From sequence record NC_028945.1: 64,000 nucleotides of DNA; one strand, given 5' to 3'. The notes beneath the pieces were generated by a model that saw nothing but the letters and a program-made list of their open reading frames with translations, had not been told where the DNA came from and ran no database searches. Below are positions 21,026 through 43,948 of this stretch, piece after piece. The position numbers and the translations under genes are program-made. Each line of letters starts with the position of its first letter. Within the stretch, counting starts at the first letter, position 1.

Positions 21026-21247
21026 ATGAGCGCCGACTGGATCGAACACGACGGACTCCAATTTCCGGGCATCGACCCGAAAACCCTTGTGTTGGTACAA
21101 TTTAGAGACGAGGCGGAAACTGACACCAACCCGCGCCCAGCGATTTATTGGGGACCGTGCTGGACACTGATCGACAGAACGTCGCCGACGTCTTCCATGA
21201 ACCGGCATTGCATCGCACGTTATCAAATAGTTGAAGGATTTATATAA
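21026..21247 (+). CDS. Hypothetical protein (WIExxG domain)
   Basis: GGGGA + ATG 21026; related to the repeat unit of 50998..51363. Confidence 0.55.
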   Translation: MSADWIEHDGLQFPGIDPKTLVLVQFRDEAETDTNPRPAIYWGPCWTLIDRTSPTSSMNRHCIARYQIVEGFI

Positions 21248-22482
21248 TGATAAAATACCTTGTGGGCGGCGCGGTCCGCGACCTGAAGATGGGCATGATG
21301 CCGAAGGACGAAGATTACGTGTGGGTCGGTGCGACTCCTGCCGATATGATCGATATGGGCATGAAGCAGGTTGGCGCGGATTTCCCGGTGTTCCTTGACG
21401 CACAAAACCGCGAACACGCACTCGCCCGGATCGAACGCAAGACCGGCGAAGGCTACAAGGGATTCGAATGCGCCTTTGACACGTCGATCACCATCGAACA
21501 AGACCTGATGCGCCGCGATCTTACCATCAACGCCATGGCAATGTTTATGGATGGTCAAATCATCGATCCGTTCGGCGGCATGGACGATCTGAAAAACAAG
21601 GTGCTTCGCCACGTCAATGCGGAAACCTTCAAGGAAGACCCGCTTCGCGTGCTGCGCGTTGCCCGTTTCCTTGCGCGGTGGAAGGATTTTGATGTCGCTC
21701 CGGAGACGTTCAAGCTGCTTCAGGAAATGGCGGCATCTGGCGAACTGAAGACGCTTCAGGCGGATCGCGTTTGGAAGGAAACGGAAAAGGCGCTGTCGGA
21801 AGAAATGCCGAGTCGGTTCTTCGTGTTCCTTCAGATGATCGGCGCGCTGAATGACGTGTTTCCGGAAGTGGCGGCACTGTTTGGGGTTCCGCAACCCTAC
21901 AAGTACCACCCGGAAGGTGATTGCTTCATTCACACGATGATGGTTCTGGACCAAATGACGGCAACTTATCATTCGCCGGTTGCCCGTTTCGCGGCTCTCT
22001 GCCACGATCTTGGCAAGGCGACGTCTGATCCGGCGAAGCTGCCTCACCACTACGGGCATGAACAGCGCGGCGAAGGAATCATCGAACGAATGGCGGAACG
22101 TCTGCCGGTTCCGAATGAATACAAGGAAATCGCGATTGCGGTTGCCAAGTACCACACTCACATTCACAACTTCGACAAGCTGAACAGCAAGACGATTGTG
22201 AAGATGTTCGATGATCTGCCACATCGCCGCTACGAAGGTGATGTGATGTGGATTCTCCCGACTGTCTCGGAATGTGATCACAAGGGACGGACGTCGTTCT
22301 TCGCGAACCGGCACTACCCGAACGCTACGAAGGCGACACAGGTGTTTCTGAAGCTGTCGCAATACAAGACGAGCGATCACAAGCCGGTTGAAGAAATCAA
22401 GGAAATGAAGCCGGAAGCAATCCGGGATTTCAACTATCGAACCAAGACGCGGATTGTCGCGGAAATGCGGGGAGTAGAATAA
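21247..22482 (+). CDS. cca: Multifunctional CCA tRNA nucleotidyltransferase with HD domain
   Basis: YLVGGAVRD, DLMRRDLTINAMA, EDPLRVLRVARF, YHPEGD...HT, LCHDLGK. Confidence 0.95.
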   Translation: MIKYLVGGAVRDLKMGMMPKDEDYVWVGATPADMIDMGMKQVGADFPVFLDAQNREHALARIERKTGEGYKGFECAFDTSITIEQDLMRRDLTINAMAMFMDGQIIDPFGGMDDLKNKVLRHVNAETFKEDPLRVLRVARFLARWKDFDVAPETFKLLQEMAASGELKTLQADRVWKETEKALSEEMPSRFFVFLQMIGALNDVFPEVAALFGVPQPYKYHPEGDCFIHTMMVLDQMTATYHSPVARFAALCHDLGKATSDPAKLPHHYGHEQRGEGIIERMAERLPVPNEYKEIAIAVAKYHTHIHNFDKLNSKTIVKMFDDLPHRRYEGDVMWILPTVSECDHKGRTSFFANRHYPNATKATQVFLKLSQYKTSDHKPVEEIKEMKPEAIRDFNYRTKTRIVAEMRGVE

Positions 22483-24570: not shown

Positions 24571-24648
24571 ATTTCGTTTCGTTTGAAATTCCTTGTTGAC
24601 AGAACACCATTATTCGAATAAATAGCTGTTCATCACAAGGAGATCAAG

Positions 24649-24789
24649 ATGAAACAACGAAATCCGATGGCGCGGGAACTCTCCCAATCCATCTACCGCA
24701 AAAAGGTCGTCAAATCCAAGAAGACCTACAACAGAAAGAAGATCGCCGGGAAACGCCATCCCGGCGATTATTTTTTGAAAGCTGCTTGA
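24649..24789 (+). CDS. 46-aa basic ArfA-like peptide (candidate ribosome-rescue factor)
   Basis: AAGGAGA RBS; MKQRNPMARELSQSIYRKKVVKSKKTYNRKKIAGKRHPGDYFLKAA; TTGAC at 24596 and ATAAATA at 24618 upstream. Confidence 0.7.
   Translation: MKQRNPMARELSQSIYRKKVVKSKKTYNRKKIAGKRHPGDYFLKAA
24742..24776 (+). terminator. Intrinsic terminator inside the ArfA-like CDS
   Basis: ATCGCCGGGA-AACGCCA-TCCCGGCGAT-TA-TTTTTT (perfect 10-bp stem); stop codon is at 24787. Confidence 0.8.
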
Positions 24790-24856
24790 TTTCTTCTCAT
24801 ACATAATTCATAACTGTCTCCAATATTTCATCCAACAATCATTGAAAATATAATCA

Positions 24857-25621
24857 TTGGCAAAACTCACGAAAGTCGAGCGACGGAATCACGCGCTCGC
24901 TGAAGACCTATTACATTCCGACAAGCCTCTTTCATGGGAAGACAAGGAATTCATCTACCGCAATTGGCATGAGGGCGCGACCCACAACAATGGCAATGCC
25001 GGTGCGTTCTTCACTCCATTCGAAATGGCGCTGGACTTCGCTTTGGAAGTCGGTGGCGGTCGGATCATCGATCTATGCGCCGGTTCCGGTATCCTGTCAT
25101 TCGGTGTCTTAACGCGACTCGGTCACTATGGCGGCTGGTCCGCACCATCCCCGGTCGAAATCGTCTGTGTCGAGTACAATCCCGATTATCTGGCGATTGG
25201 CAAGCGGCTGGTCCCGGAAGCGACATGGATCAATGCCGATGTCTTCGACGTGCTGGATATGGACCTTGGAAAGTTCGACTATGCGATTTCCAATCCGCCA
25301 TTTGGCAAGGTCAAGCGTTCAAAGAATTCGCCGGGATATTCTGGCGCGGACTTTGAATTCCATGTGATCGACATCGCTTCCCGGATCGCTGATTATGGCG
25401 TCTTCATTGTTCCTCAGAACAATGCTGGTTTCAATTATTCCGGAAAGCGCTTTTATGAGCGGCAGACCGAAGGCAAGGCTGTCAAATTCCAGCAAGACAC
25501 TGGTTTGTATTTTGAATGCGGCATTGGCGTTGACACATCGATCTTCCGCAATGAATGGAAGGGTGTCAGTCCGGCAACAGAGATTGTCTCTGTCACTTTC
25601 AATCCCAATGACATCGGATAA
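24857..25621 (+). CDS. SAM-dependent amino-methyltransferase (probably DNA N6-adenine type)
   Basis: GAFFTP, IIDLCAGSG (motif I), ISNPPF (motif IV); TTG start. Confidence 0.85.
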   Translation: MAKLTKVERRNHALAEDLLHSDKPLSWEDKEFIYRNWHEGATHNNGNAGAFFTPFEMALDFALEVGGGRIIDLCAGSGILSFGVLTRLGHYGGWSAPSPVEIVCVEYNPDYLAIGKRLVPEATWINADVFDVLDMDLGKFDYAISNPPFGKVKRSKNSPGYSGADFEFHVIDIASRIADYGVFIVPQNNAGFNYSGKRFYERQTEGKAVKFQQDTGLYFECGIGVDTSIFRNEWKGVSPATEIVSVTFNPNDIG

Positions 25622-25627
25622 TAAATA
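25621..25627 (+). promoter_or_regulatory. T4-type late promoter
   Basis: ATAAATA 32 nt upstream of ATG 25660. Confidence 0.65.
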
Positions 25628-25659
25628 ACTTTTTAAGTTTTATTCATTGGGAGCAATAG

Positions 25660-26412
25660 ATGTCTCTACTCAAAGAGTTTCGGGAATATCAAAAGGCGCT
25701 TCAGGAACAGGCACTTTTAGCCGAGACCGATGCTTATTTCGAAGCCTACGATCAAATGTACGATCAGCTTGAAGAAGCTGTTGTTTTGAATGAGAATACA
25801 CTTGTCAATCCGGCATTTTCTCCGGGTGAGAAGCTTGCCGAACTTGGAACTCTTGCCAAGCAGATTGCTGGTGGCATCATTTCCAAAGCTGACATTGCCG
25901 ACAAGCTTGGTAGTGTTTACGACAAGTTTAAGAATTTCTTCGAATCGGTTAAAGACAAGTTCAAGACGATCCTTCAGAAAGCCGCCAACAAATTTTCAAA
26001 CACCAAAATCCTTGCCCAATTGAAGCCGCTGAAATCCTTGCTGGATAAGGTCGATGGTCGCGGCAAGAGCCTGTCGAGTATTACTGACTTGGTGCGCGGC
26101 GCGGCGATTTTTGAAGATCGCGAGGATGCCGAAAAATTCGTCAAAGACCTTCAGCGCAAGCATGGCGACAAGATCGTTGAGTTTGTCGAAAAGACCAAAG
26201 GCAGTGATATGGTGTATGGTTATTATGGTACATACCATCTGCTTATCGAGATTGACGGCATCATTTGTGAAATTCAGGTTGCCACGAAGAAGCTTTGGAA
26301 GCAGAAGAAGCTTGCTCATAAGGTTTACACTGCTACGCGTTCAAGCTCTGATGGTCCGTCGAAGGAAGATTCCCAACTGTCCAAGCGTCTCTTCAGCAAA
26401 GGAAATCGGTAG
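25660..26412 (+). CDS. RelA/SpoT-like (small alarmone synthetase fold) nucleotidyltransferase with Glu-rich N-terminal extension
   Basis: LKPLKSLLDK, ITDLVRG, GYYGTYH, CEIQVAT, AHKVY in RSH synthetase order. Confidence 0.75.
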   Translation: MSLLKEFREYQKALQEQALLAETDAYFEAYDQMYDQLEEAVVLNENTLVNPAFSPGEKLAELGTLAKQIAGGIISKADIADKLGSVYDKFKNFFESVKDKFKTILQKAANKFSNTKILAQLKPLKSLLDKVDGRGKSLSSITDLVRGAAIFEDREDAEKFVKDLQRKHGDKIVEFVEKTKGSDMVYGYYGTYHLLIEIDGIICEIQVATKKLWKQKKLAHKVYTATRSSSDGPSKEDSQLSKRLFSKGNR

Positions 26413-26496
26413 AGAATTTCGTTTTATTTCAAGTTACCCTGTTGACATCGGGAACAATATGTCCTACAAAGACATAGAAACAAAAGAGAGTTCCCG

Positions 26497-26892
26497 ATGT
26501 CCGAAAAAATCTCGTTCGAAGTTGACAGCTTGACCTACGTCGTAGAGTTTGACAACAACGAATTTTTCCTGTACGTCGATGGCACCAAAGCCAAGACCAA
26601 GATCGCCGAAGAAGTTGAGTTTGACGGCTTTGATTTCTTCGAAGAAACATCACACAACGTCATGAAGTCTTCCGAGTTAGTCAAGGCGAAGTCGCCGCTC
26701 AAGATTTTCAAGAACGTCTTGAAGTTTGTCGAAGACATGATCGGCAAGCACAAGCCGCACTTCTTCTTCTTCGCTGCCAATGAAGAAAAGAAGATCAGTC
26801 TGTATTCGACCGTTGCCCAACAAATCGCCAAGAAGAGCGAATATTATCTTCAGGCAGACGGCGGTAGCTTCTACTTCTACAAGCAAGCCTAA
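26497..26892 (+). CDS. Hypothetical early protein
   Basis: Promoter cassette with TTGAC at 26442. Confidence 0.7.
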   Translation: MSEKISFEVDSLTYVVEFDNNEFFLYVDGTKAKTKIAEEVEFDGFDFFEETSHNVMKSSELVKAKSPLKIFKNVLKFVEDMIGKHKPHFFFFAANEEKKISLYSTVAQQIAKKSEYYLQADGGSFYFYKQA

Positions 26893-26915
26893 CGCCACTT
26901 TCACAAAAGGAATTT

Positions 26916-27128
26916 TTGATTTTGCTTGACATCTATCCAGAAATGGTTAGAGCGTTCTTCCTCGTCCTGATTATGAATCCATCAGGCGACCCCGCCATGA
27001 CCACCATTCCCATCTCATATGAAACGCGCATCGCATGCGAAGAAGCCGGTATTAAGTGGCTGAAGGATATGCCGCGCTCCAATGATTTTTATTGTGTCTA
27101 TCACGAGACTCGCAAGGATTTGAAATGA
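26916..27128 (+). CDS. Small putative exported protein
   Basis: Hydrophobic N-terminus, two Cys. Confidence 0.5.
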   Translation: MILLDIYPEMVRAFFLVLIMNPSGDPAMTTIPISYETRIACEEAGIKWLKDMPRSNDFYCVYHETRKDLK

Positions 27129-27334
27129 ATATAAGATTTCCTATTTTTGAGAAAGACCCGGAGACCCCGTTTGAGTACATCATGGGCGCGGCGCTGATTA
27201 TTCTCGCTATCGTGTCTGGTATGGCAATTATCGCCGCATCGATCTTCTTTCTTGGATTCTGGTCAATTCCGATCTATGGAGTGATTGTGCTCGCCATCGC
27301 CTTCTATAAAGGCTATATTAAGTTCGAAAAATGA
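27125..27334 (+). CDS. Small membrane protein
   Basis: Two TM segments; ATGA overlaps. Confidence 0.55.
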   Translation: MNIRFPIFEKDPETPFEYIMGAALIILAIVSGMAIIAASIFFLGFWSIPIYGVIVLAIAFYKGYIKFEK

Positions 27335-27801
27335 GCCGCTATCATCCCTACGATTGCCAGTCATGCGGCGCTCCCATCGGCTATCTTGGTCGGTTCTTCA
27401 AATGGGTTCATTTCCCCGGCTCACATCAGTGTAAGAACACGCTTGATCCCTATAAATACAAGCAGATTCTTGTGGTCCGCAAAGACCTGAACATGCGCAA
27501 GGGAAAAATCGCCGCACAATGCGCGCACGCGACCCTTGCCGCCTATCTCGAAAATTCAAGCGATGAACGCATGGTGGCATGGCTCAAAGGACCATTCACC
27601 AAGATTTGCGTATCCGTCGATTCTGAAGCAGACATCTTGCGAGTGGAGCGACAAGCCAAGGCAAATGGTCTGATCACCAGAATGATCATAGACGCCGGTA
27701 GGACCGAATTTAATGGTGTTCCAACCCGGACGGTGCTCGCGGTCGGTCCCGACACTCACGAAGCTCTACAGCCGATTACAGGAGATTTGAAACTACTATG
27801 A
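27331..27801 (+). CDS. pth2: Peptidyl-tRNA hydrolase type 2 with N-terminal Cys/His extension
   Basis: KQILVVRKDL.MRKGKIAAQCAHA, KICVSV, IDAGRTEF, TVLAVGP, TGDLKLL. Confidence 0.93.
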   Translation: MSRYHPYDCQSCGAPIGYLGRFFKWVHFPGSHQCKNTLDPYKYKQILVVRKDLNMRKGKIAAQCAHATLAAYLENSSDERMVAWLKGPFTKICVSVDSEADILRVERQAKANGLITRMIIDAGRTEFNGVPTRTVLAVGPDTHEALQPITGDLKLL

Positions 27802-28088
27802 TGTCAGACAAAGAACTCACCGGCACATTGGTACTGATCGACCGCTACAAAGGGATGATGGCGAAACATTACATCATCCCGGTCCAAAGCGAAGGCGGCA
27901 TCGGTATCCAGCATGCCGGTTGGATGTTGGAAGAATTGGAAAAGAAAATTCATAGCGGCGATCCGGCTTTTGATGACGGCAAGTGTGGGCGTTGGGTTGG
28001 TTTCATTCAGCATGCGCTCGCTGTCGCGGGCTTCACCACGGTCAAGGAAGAACGCGATTTTTCAAGACCTTATTTTAGGAAAGACTAA
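27798..28088 (+). CDS. Hypothetical protein
   Basis: KCGRWVGFIQ motif common in phage proteins. Confidence 0.65.
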   Translation: MMSDKELTGTLVLIDRYKGMMAKHYIIPVQSEGGIGIQHAGWMLEELEKKIHSGDPAFDDGKCGRWVGFIQHALAVAGFTTVKEERDFSRPYFRKD

Positions 28089-43315: not shown

Positions 43316-43948
43316 TTACTTGGCTGCGATTATAGCGGCATAAAAAGCCTTCGCTTCCCCGGCAATCTTTTCCGCTTTGTCGGTTCCATTAATGATTCGG
43401 CGAGCACCAACCCAATCGGTTTTGGTGTCATTGAAGTAATCGGAAAGCTTCTTGCCAGTATATGCGCCCGATGTCATACCATCAAACATGATCGCAACGG
43501 CAAAATCAGGTTCCAATGCTTTATCGGGATTATTTTCAATTCCGTATTTGCGGTAGTTATCGCGTCCTGTGAGTTGGACAAGCCCCCTGCCACGCATGAG
43601 CCAACCATCGCCGGAAGCTTCCGGACCGTTGCCCATACGATTGCCATATGCGCGATTCGCAATGGCTTGTGGCTTGCGCTCATACTTGGCAGCATCGGCA
43701 AGATTGAAATATTTGGGGAACGTCGCCCGAAGACCCTTCGCCGAATAGTTCAAATTCTCCATGATCGGAACCATTCGCCCGCCTGTCTCGTGGAAGGCAG
43801 TCGCCAAGGCATAAGCAAGCCAACGCGCGTCAAGCTTCTCCATCCTATTCAGGATCGCCGAAATCCCCACAACTTGTTCCGAGGAAAGTCTGCCATTGAA
43901 CAACAACGGGTTGTCACGGATGGCGTCGAAGAATTTCTTTCTGTCCAT
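43316..43948 (-). CDS. Endolysin, glycoside hydrolase family 19
   Basis: LAYALATAFHETG, ENLNYS, RGRGLVQLTGRDNY, ARRIING; late promoter at 43972-43978. Confidence 0.9.
   Translation of the reverse strand: MDRKKFFDAIRDNPLLFNGRLSSEQVVGISAILNRMEKLDARWLAYALATAFHETGGRMVPIMENLNYSAKGLRATFPKYFNLADAAKYERKPQAIANRAYGNRMGNGPEASGDGWLMRGRGLVQLTGRDNYRKYGIENNPDKALEPDFAVAIMFDGMTSGAYTGKKLSDYFNDTKTDWVGARRIINGTDKAEKIAGEAKAFYAAIIAAK

Follow-up and report, generated by a model that had tools for sequence, protein, structure and literature searches.

The subject of this analysis is gp279, a gene for a RelA/SpoT-homologue (RSH) synthetase that lies within a stretch of 64,000 nucleotides from the sequence record NC_028945.1 (the window). 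The reading favoured here, to which a probability of roughly 55% is given, is that gp279 is a late, head-packaged, protease-trimmed and injected RSH enzyme, limited by the early products gp280 and gp398. According to this proposal, an RSH-fold pyrophosphokinase would be made late in infection as a proprotein, whose residues 1-45, consisting of a T4-type capsid-targeting tag and an acidic helix, would direct it to the scaffolding core within the prohead. Cleavage after L43-N44-E45 by the phage's S77 prohead protease would follow, generating within the head a basic enzyme of 205 residues that would be delivered to the next cell along with the DNA and there move pyrophosphate from ATP to the 3'-OH of a purine. 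The acceptor would be GDP/GTP or ADP/ATP, leading to an alarmone, or, less likely, the CCA end of tRNA. Early products from host-type promoters would limit the enzyme, namely its neighbour gp280, which is probably a binding inhibitor, and the SpoT-type hydrolase gp398. What the sequences provide is the fold, the conserved catalytic residues, the tag and L/I-x-E site of the family, the promoter motifs, the linkage of the genes, and the existence of genes for the protease and for late transcription; packaging, cleavage, injection, timing, substrate and the antidote roles are inferred. The RSH annotation of gp279 is known already; a literature search yielded no paper in which the capsid targeting sequence is connected with RSH enzymes, nor any mention of the conserved processing site, of the split between late and early promoters or of the conserved partner of the RSH family.

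Bases 24800-27900 of the window are 100% identical to Sinorhizobium phage phiN3 (NC_028945.1 148800-151900, window positions being record positions minus 124000), and 97% identical to phiM12, phiM19 and phiM7; all four phages are T4-superfamily myoviruses of the genus Emdodecavirus. The gene itself corresponds, with 100% identity, to positions 149660-150412 of the record, where it is annotated as 'RelA/SpoT family protein', as are its orthologues in phiM12 (SmphiM12_365) and phiM19, and it is matched by phrog_37685 (E 1.8e-172). A first-pass annotation of the DNA had proposed a late-expressed RSH-fold enzyme with a head-protein-like N-terminus, packaged in the virion and injected. This interpretation is partly supported by the results given below, and the protein features that it quoted (MSLLKEFREY, LLAE, LEE, LNE and all of the synthetase motifs) are present in the open reading frame (ORF).

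The AlphaFold2 (AF2) model of gp279, with a mean predicted local distance difference test score (pLDDT) of 92, was compared by Foldseek with structures of the Protein Data Bank (PDB), and the top 50 matches were all RSH synthetases, with template-modelling (TM) scores of 0.4-0.6. CapRel was the best of these (E 5e-7, TM 0.58), followed by RelQ, RelP, Rel and an exported Streptomyces small alarmone synthetase. Judged from this model, gp279 has the RSH-synthetase fold that the first-pass annotation had recognized, no non-RSH family being present among these 50 matches. At the sequence level, the single protein scores 23.0 bits against Pfam PF04607 (RelA_SpoT), for which the cut-off is 27 (E 1e-4, model positions 3-106 of 113), while 97 of the 110 aligned members of its family match RelA_SpoT at E <=1e-3 (best 2.8e-12). 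The family profile, when compared with PDB sequences, recognizes M. tuberculosis Rel (1e-6), a RelQ-like protein (1e-6) and Tas1 (0.009), and CapRel is not among its matches. Use of the family profile was needed here, the sole match of the single gp279 sequence to PDB sequences being phosphoglycerate kinase, which was discarded as spurious.

All five synthetase motifs are present in gp279 (Table 1), to a degree far exceeding chance, and with them the catalytic Glu, the Tyr that stacks on the acceptor and the basic residues that bind ATP. Besides the residues whose conservation is listed in Table 1, K178 is invariant in the 110-member alignment, and R134 and R227 are at least 90% conserved. Alignment to Rel bears out the earlier remark that motifs 2 and 4 deviate from their canonical forms: the Arg of the syn2-like motif stands two residues earlier than in D-x-x-G-x-R, and the syn4-like motif has the catalytic Glu and lacks the canonical Arg.

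The protein belongs to a phage-restricted RSH family found in T4-like contexts. An exhaustive profile search with gp279 yielded 477 clusters at E <=1e-3 and 118 at 1e-30, most members being stand-alone proteins of 200-270 residues. A scan of 185,579 cellular genomes, performed with two strict patterns derived from six close sequences, found two contigs of metagenome-assembled genomes only, a count that is to be read as a lower bound. Whichever member served as query, the family was present in only 7 distinct genomes of cultured phages (11 records, four being RefSeq/GenBank or renamed duplicates), carried by four phages of the phiM12 group, one Desulfovibrio phage (two records), one Variovorax phage and one Paraglaciecola phage. 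Genomic context was provided by a sample of 20 IMG/VR loci on contigs of 11 to 256 kb, 13 of which exceed 85 kb. These RSH loci hold genes of the T4 core, coding for DNA polymerase (gp43), gp41, UvsX, gp32, gp59, gp44/45, UvsW and RNase H, and further RSH loci hold the gp33 coactivator, gp32, UvsX or T4 RNA ligase.

The case for head targeting is built on the N-terminus. In T4, the first ten residues of IPII and IPIII (translated from ipII and ipIII of NC_000866) are identical to each other, with an aromatic residue at position 4, F at 7, I at 8 and E at 10. Residues 1-10 of IPIII are enough for head targeting, which depends mainly on residues 4 and 7, while processing depends on residues 8 and 10; T4 propeptides comprise 10-19 residues, and targeting persists when cleavage at residue 10 is blocked (PMC9026906). 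Among 113 stand-alone members of the gp279 family, position 4 is occupied by F in 50% and position 7 by F or Y in 51%; L or I at position 8 and E at position 10 are each found in 38%. All four key positions are found in 31 of these 113 proteins, compared with 6 of 710 background ORFs from the same loci, and four or more identities to the T4 ten-mer in 38 of 113 compared with 18 of 710. In gp279, L4 and F7 are present, with Leu at the position where the two T4 proteins have an aromatic residue. Two relatives that are 49% identical to it, P0004 and P0005, carry all four positions, as does the RSH protein of the Paraglaciecola phage, and that of the Desulfovibrio phage has positions 4, 7 and 8, its Glu being shifted to residue 11.

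A predicted processing site, of the L/I-x-E form used by the T4 prohead protease, directly precedes the conserved catalytic domain, 10 to 60 residues from the N-terminus of each member. In the 110-member alignment, Glu makes up 98% of the column of E45, and two columns earlier L is found in 56%, I in 24% and V in 4%. The AF2 model of gp279 places a helix at residues 2-41 and has a pLDDT below 50 at residues 39-44, so that L43-N44-E45 falls in a low-confidence linker, and the protein is split by charge between an acidic N-terminal part (residues 1-45) and a basic remainder (residues 46-250; Table 1). As judged from the alignment, the conserved L-N-E at 43-45 could serve instead of the lost processing positions 8 and 10. 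The T4-type head-targeting propeptide ending at L/I-x-E that had been proposed earlier is supported at the level of the family, through the shared tag and the 98% conserved Glu, and is weakened in phiN3 itself by the loss of positions 8 and 10. The machinery that head targeting would need is present in this phage, which has an S77 prohead protease (Peptidase_S77, E 1.6e-32), a gp55-like sigma factor and a gp33-like coactivator; its annotated genes also include prohead core scaffold/protease, scaffold, major head and portal genes.

Two further observations touch the N-terminal region. The context of the predicted cleavage site in gp279 is A-V-V-L-N-E-N, and residues 32-37 of the phiN3 major head protein (L002:31610-31724, minus strand) read A-V-V-L followed by E and N; the A-V-V-L common to gp279 and the N-terminus of the major head protein may reflect a common context for protease cleavage, or coincidence. 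The tag itself was also seen on ORFs that are not RSH genes, namely L019:2598-3197, which codes for an HD_4 hydrolase (E 5e-19) and directly follows the RSH gene, L018:3146-4162, L020:3029-4894, L005:8921-9931 and L005:13116-14312. Besides the HD_4 hydrolase, the tagged proteins are one with a DnaJ domain, an AAA/STAND-like NTPase and two unknowns; the tag always stands at the start of the ORF and on the strand of the RSH gene, and several of the ORFs have late motifs upstream. From its distribution in sequence, the tag appears to behave as a modular cargo address, and the tagged non-RSH ORFs may form a catalogue of injected cargo.

The sequence upstream of gp279 is suggestive of late expression. 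The motif ATAAATA, taken for a late promoter in the first-pass annotation, overlaps the stop codon of the upstream methyltransferase gene, and both its sequence and its spacing are those seen at phiN3 structural genes, whose operons carry CTAAATA or CATAAATA at -30 to -55. Its position is informative because only 13 phiN3 ORFs genome-wide, gp279 among them, have [C/A]TAAATA and a Shine-Dalgarno sequence within 70 nucleotides upstream, and six of these are structural (major head, scaffold, tail tube, sheath, baseplate and an ORF of the structural block). Among the relatives, ATAAATA lies within 60 nucleotides upstream of 10 of 18 distinct IMG/VR RSH genes, compared with 5.8% of 670 background ORF starts (binomial p 1.3e-8), and the sigma-70-like box TTGAC[A/T] is upstream of none of the 18, compared with a background of 11.8%. 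The closest metagenomic relative with context (L038) and a hydrolase-fused member (L039) have TATAAATA upstream of their RSH genes. In addition, the 38-nucleotide spacer before gp279 is identical in phiN3, phiM12 and phiM7, whereas the adjoining coding DNA differs. The annotated products of phiN3 include a late sigma factor (gp55-like) and a 'late promoter transcriptional regulator', and a match to the gp33-type coactivator family was found (E 1.1e-13).

Late-type words were also noted at other genes of the window. The ORFs at 43948, 41944 and 63025, all on the minus strand and of 210, 96 and 602 residues, have such a word and a Shine-Dalgarno sequence upstream; they lie outside the structural block, have no Pfam match, and are candidates for additional late or virion proteins. 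Closer to gp279, the 46-residue, very Lys/Arg-rich ORF gp277 (24649-24789) is preceded by ATAAATA at 24618-24624, 31 nucleotides upstream, its 3' end being overlapped by a strong terminator-like hairpin of 11 pairs (24741-24769), and it may be a small, late-expressed basic peptide.

The first-pass annotation had seen no adjacent antitoxin, a statement that does not hold: a gp280-family gene, detected with a ten-homologue profile, lies directly beside the RSH gene in 16 of the 20 IMG/VR loci, and SpoT-type hydrolases are linked or fused to it. The partner also adjoins the RSH gene in L029, L036, L038 and L039, and is convergent with it in six loci, sometimes with a common stop region. TTGAC[A/T] is found within 70 nucleotides upstream of 7 of 9 distinct partner genes (background 11.8%, p 9e-6), several of which display the full layout of -35 box, 17 nucleotides and -10 box. 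The promoter-like sequence ahead of gp280 itself (Table 1) is omitted by the built-in promoter scan, whose rule wants T as the last base of the second hexamer, and the 84-nucleotide spacer before gp280 is identical in phiN3, phiM12 and phiM7. No match to gp280 was found in the Pfam, NCBIfam and PADLOC families, and gp279 likewise has no match in the latter two. Its AF2 model, with a pLDDT of 73, has no significant match among PDB structures, where only weak GNAT-like and AcrVA5 matches were obtained; a role as acetyltransferase was rejected, with TM scores of 0.4-0.5, E above 0.03 and without a cofactor motif. In BFVD, the model matches larger phage proteins at E 3.5e-5 to 7e-3, including a 778-residue zeta-toxin-domain protein and a 278-residue protein of Agrobacterium phage Atu_ph07, as well as deaminase-domain and ParB-domain proteins, these names being those of the whole proteins and not necessarily of the matched region. 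The modelled fold may be a portable adaptor or immunity-like domain, and conservation, position and promoter type suggest an antidote role for gp280.

Nine loci have a SpoT-type HD_4 hydrolase no further than about 8 kb from the RSH gene, the distance being at most 2 kb in seven of them. In P0030, Pfam recognizes an HD_4 domain fused to the RSH domain, while for P0045 fusion is inferred from its HD-like N-terminus alone. Most of the linked hydrolases are untagged and stand behind sigma-70-like (TTGAC) boxes; the L019 copy has both the tag and a late motif. The phiN3 hydrolase gp398 (record positions 206215-206688) has a match to HD_4 that reaches the cut-off and one (E 9e-16) to the part of the spoT_relA model that represents the hydrolase, and is a second candidate antidote. 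In Paraglaciecola Antarctic GD virus 1 (L035:2899-4438), the tagged RSH gene (gp92), a 91-residue ORF and a second 'RelA/SpoT family protein' of 136 residues are consecutive; the 91-residue ORF has no match to the partner profile, and the 136-residue protein is possibly a hydrolase, by its size and position.

With regard to the acceptor, the syn2 signature has been described as R-Y-T in adenosine 3'-pyrophosphokinases and A-V-R in guanosine enzymes, and S-x-H in syn3 as the form of guanosine enzymes, while exchange of syn motifs does not change adenosine/guanosine specificity (PMC12226406). By comparison, gp279 is mixed: motif 2 is adenosine-like, on our own alignment of the R-Y-T triplet to R146-G-A, motif 3 is guanosine-like, and motif 4 is neither. 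Because the motifs are mixed and motif swaps do not switch specificity, an assignment from the syn2, syn3 and syn4 signatures was dropped; a nucleotide is the probable acceptor, and the CCA end of tRNA a rather unlikely one. The linked hydrolases do not name the substrate, since small alarmone hydrolases also reverse tRNA pyrophosphorylation. Genes for a CCA-adding-type nucleotidyltransferase with an HD domain (PolyA_pol, E 4e-19; 21247-22482) and, on the other flank, for a PTH2 peptidyl-tRNA hydrolase (E 4e-35; 27331-27801) are located within 4.5 kb of the RSH gene, and the phiN3 genome also has a tRNA-His guanylyltransferase, an RNA ligase and six tRNAs. These tRNA-related genes could bear on a tRNA-directed activity.

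Table 1. Features of the gp279-gp280 region, in window positions
Feature	Position	Strand	Remarks
T4-type late-promoter-like motif ATAAATA	25621..25627	+	context AATAAATAA; 39 nt upstream of gp279 ATG
Shine-Dalgarno GGGAG	25649..25653	+	6 nt before gp279 ATG; read from sequence
RSH (RelA/SpoT-homologue) synthetase gene gp279	25660..26412	+	250 aa, ATG start; YP_009212523.1
Partial capsid-targeting-sequence-like tag, residues 1-10	25660..25689	+	hydrophobic L4, F7; positions 8 and 10 not kept
Predicted acidic propeptide, residues 1-45	25660..25794	+	isoelectric point (pI) 4.1; long helix, then disordered linker
L43-N44-E45, predicted prohead-protease (L/I-x-E) processing site	25786..25794	+	from alignment conservation
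Predicted mature enzyme, residues 46-250	25795..26409	+	basic, pI 9.6, 22.8 kDa; RSH synthetase fold
syn1-like motif K122..S126..D129-K130	26023..26049	+	K122, K130 invariant in 110 sequences
syn2-like motif D143-L-V-R146-G147	26086..26100	+	D143 invariant, R146 at least 90% conserved
syn3-like motif G187-Y-Y-G-T-Y-H193 (S/T-x-H type)	26218..26238	+	G190, H193 invariant; G187, Y188 at least 90% conserved
syn4-like motif E204-I-Q206-V-A-T209	26269..26286	+	E204 invariant, Q206 at least 90% conserved
syn5-like motif H220..Y223	26317..26328	+	both residues at least 90% conserved
Sigma-70-like promoter TTGACA, 17 nt, TACAAA	26442..26470	+	ahead of gp280; read from sequence
Conserved partner gene gp280	26497..26892	+	131 aa; candidate early-expressed antidote/immunity protein of the RSH enzyme

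A number of observations weigh against a late, packaged gp279. The phiN3 tag is degenerate, with 3 of ten residues as in the T4 ten-mer and with R8 and Y10 at the processing positions; a strict scan of the whole phiN3 genome for the tag at ORF starts found only gp279, and use of the signal in the phiM12 group is therefore conjectural. The tag is also missing in the HD-fused P0030 and in the protein of the Variovorax phage. The bare word ATAAATA is not enriched in the window (7 occurrences for 4.2 expected, a number reached by 15 of 100 shuffles), and gp279 sits in a long same-strand run of small non-structural genes in which the window scan found no terminator ahead of it, so that read-through could also give early transcription. 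It is not among the phiN3 products annotated as 'virion structural protein', and text searches for the locus tag gave nothing relevant. In phiM7, one single-base indel turns the orthologue (L032:1201-1952, NC_041929.1) into two hypothetical ORFs, which means either that gp279 is dispensable in culture or that the record contains a sequencing error; the phiM12 and phiM19 orthologues are intact. As for gp280, the matches of its modelled fold to larger proteins named after enzyme domains suggest that it may be an adaptor rather than an inhibitor.

Several of these points (the setting among early-type small genes of one strand with no upstream terminator, the missing tag positions 8 and 10, the absence of any other tagged ORF in phiN3, the lack of a virion annotation, and the existence of untagged and HD-fused relatives) would fit a cytoplasmic host-takeover enzyme that is never packaged, as would the fact that the family is nearest by sequence to true (p)ppGpp synthetases. 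Such an enzyme would drive up (p)ppGpp or (p)ppApp and redirect the transcription and metabolism of the host, its N-terminal helix being a regulatory or oligomerisation element and gp398 balancing the nucleotide pool. This explanation is considered unlikely, if worth keeping in mind; it does not account for the family-wide match to the T4 tag, for the 98% conserved Glu of an L/I-x-E in a disordered linker, for the enrichment of late promoters and the lack of sigma-70-like boxes upstream of all 18 RSH genes, or for the opposite promoter type and orientation of the partner. The conserved partner and the linked small alarmone hydrolase would fit a phage-borne toxin-antitoxin or exclusion module of the PhRel/FaRel kind, in which gp279 would be a small alarmone synthetase of the toxic type (toxSAS), with gp280 and gp398 as its antitoxins, acting within the infected cell, either against rival phages or as an addiction element, without being injected. 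The layout recalls that of FaRel, with its hydrolase and small antitoxin (PMC7229694), and that of Apk2, IapK and Aph1 (PMC12226406), and the best fold match, CapRel, is a toxSAS. The carriers, however, are virulent-type T4-superfamily phages, the RSH gene and its partner are mostly transcribed as separate units from promoters of different type and converge in six loci, neither gp279 nor gp280 has a PADLOC match, and the N-terminal tag and the L/I-x-E site would be left unexplained; the module is regarded as improbable.

That gp279 might be a catalytically dead RSH-fold protein, with a structural or binding role, is suggested by its non-canonical motifs 2 and 4, with the syn2 Arg shifted and the syn4 Arg absent, and by a Pfam score below the gathering cut-off. 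The deviating motifs, however, are invariant or nearly so over 110 sequences at 30-77% identity, catalytic Glu, acceptor-stacking Tyr and basic ATP-binding residues are present, and linkage to SpoT-type hydrolases implies a hydrolysable product, which makes this possibility very slight. The preferred reading of gp279 as a packaged and injected enzyme can be extended to the family as a whole, whose members would be true internal head proteins of environmental T4-superfamily phages, loaded by the tag, trimmed and injected, and producing in the new host a brief alarmone or tRNA-end-blocking pulse that is ended by a dedicated, early-made inhibitor of the gp280 family and by the hydrolase; this extension is put forward tentatively.

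Among known systems, the T4 internal proteins IPI, IPII and IPIII and Alt share with the gp279 family a tag of some ten N-terminal residues whose key positions (4, 7, 8 and 10) coincide, a propeptide ending in L/I-x-E and a basic mature protein; in both cases the setting is a T4-superfamily phage with an S77 protease, and the tag is common to unrelated cargo proteins. The cargo differs, gp279 being an RSH pyrophosphokinase and not a restriction inhibitor or ADP-ribosyltransferase, and phiN3 departs further from T4 in its predicted propeptide of 45 residues and in the loss of the processing half of the tag, packaging of gp279 being a prediction. A second parallel is provided by the MuF-Apk2 proteins, head-associated (p)ppApp synthetases that have one binding and one hydrolase immunity protein (PMC12226406). 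The RSH-type domain of gp279 is similarly tied to the phage head through a match of its residues 73-231 to region 309-472 of the 504 positions of phrog_7625, 'head morphogenesis' (E 7.7e-6), and its small candidate binding partner and SpoT-type hydrolase correspond to IapK and Aph1 (PMC12226406). Searches of Pfam and phrog found neither a MuF nor another N-terminal domain in gp279, the phrog_7625 match being C-terminal only. Unlike MuF-Apk2, which is carried by temperate phages, gp279 occurs in virulent T4-like phages and has as head address a short tag that is predicted to be cleavable; its partner is unrelated to any named family and separately transcribed, and its syn signatures are mixed.

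The likeness to toxSAS enzymes (FaRel, FaRel2, PhRel, PhRel2 and CapRel) lies in a single-domain RSH synthetase with CapRel as best fold match, and the FaRel three-gene module (PMC7229694) also combines such an enzyme with a small alarmone hydrolase and a small neighbour gene. In contrast to the co-transcribed bi- or tricistronic operons of toxSAS, gp279 and its partner do not form a bicistronic operon, the partner being convergent in 6 of 20 loci and usually having its own sigma-70-like promoter, and the family is phage-restricted rather than bacterial. With RelQ, RelP and the synthetase domain of Rel, its nearest solved relatives in sequence (E ~1e-6), gp279 has in common the fold and the five motifs; it differs from them in its identity of only ~14-20%, the shifted Arg of motif 2, the missing Arg of motif 4, a predicted N-terminal propeptide and a viral context.

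Alarmone synthetases have three known roles, as stress regulators, as toxins of toxin-antitoxin systems, and as effectors delivered by type VI secretion or fused to MuF, while anti-restriction is the role for which the capsid-targeted internal proteins of T4 are mainly known. If the reading proposed here is true, T4-like phages would carry a ready-made enzyme with which to take control of the host's nucleotide signalling or translation during the first seconds after infection begins, and the way in which this enzyme is timed would become apparent from the contrast in promoter type between the RSH gene on the one hand and its partner and hydrolase on the other. The T4 tag would reach far beyond the T-even group, into phages that infect alpha-proteobacteria, marine bacteria and sulfate reducers, and, as a general cargo address, would provide a sequence rule for finding injected proteins in metagenomes. 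The system would represent an injected toxin with a delayed antidote, for which phiN3 and phiM12 would be cultured models.

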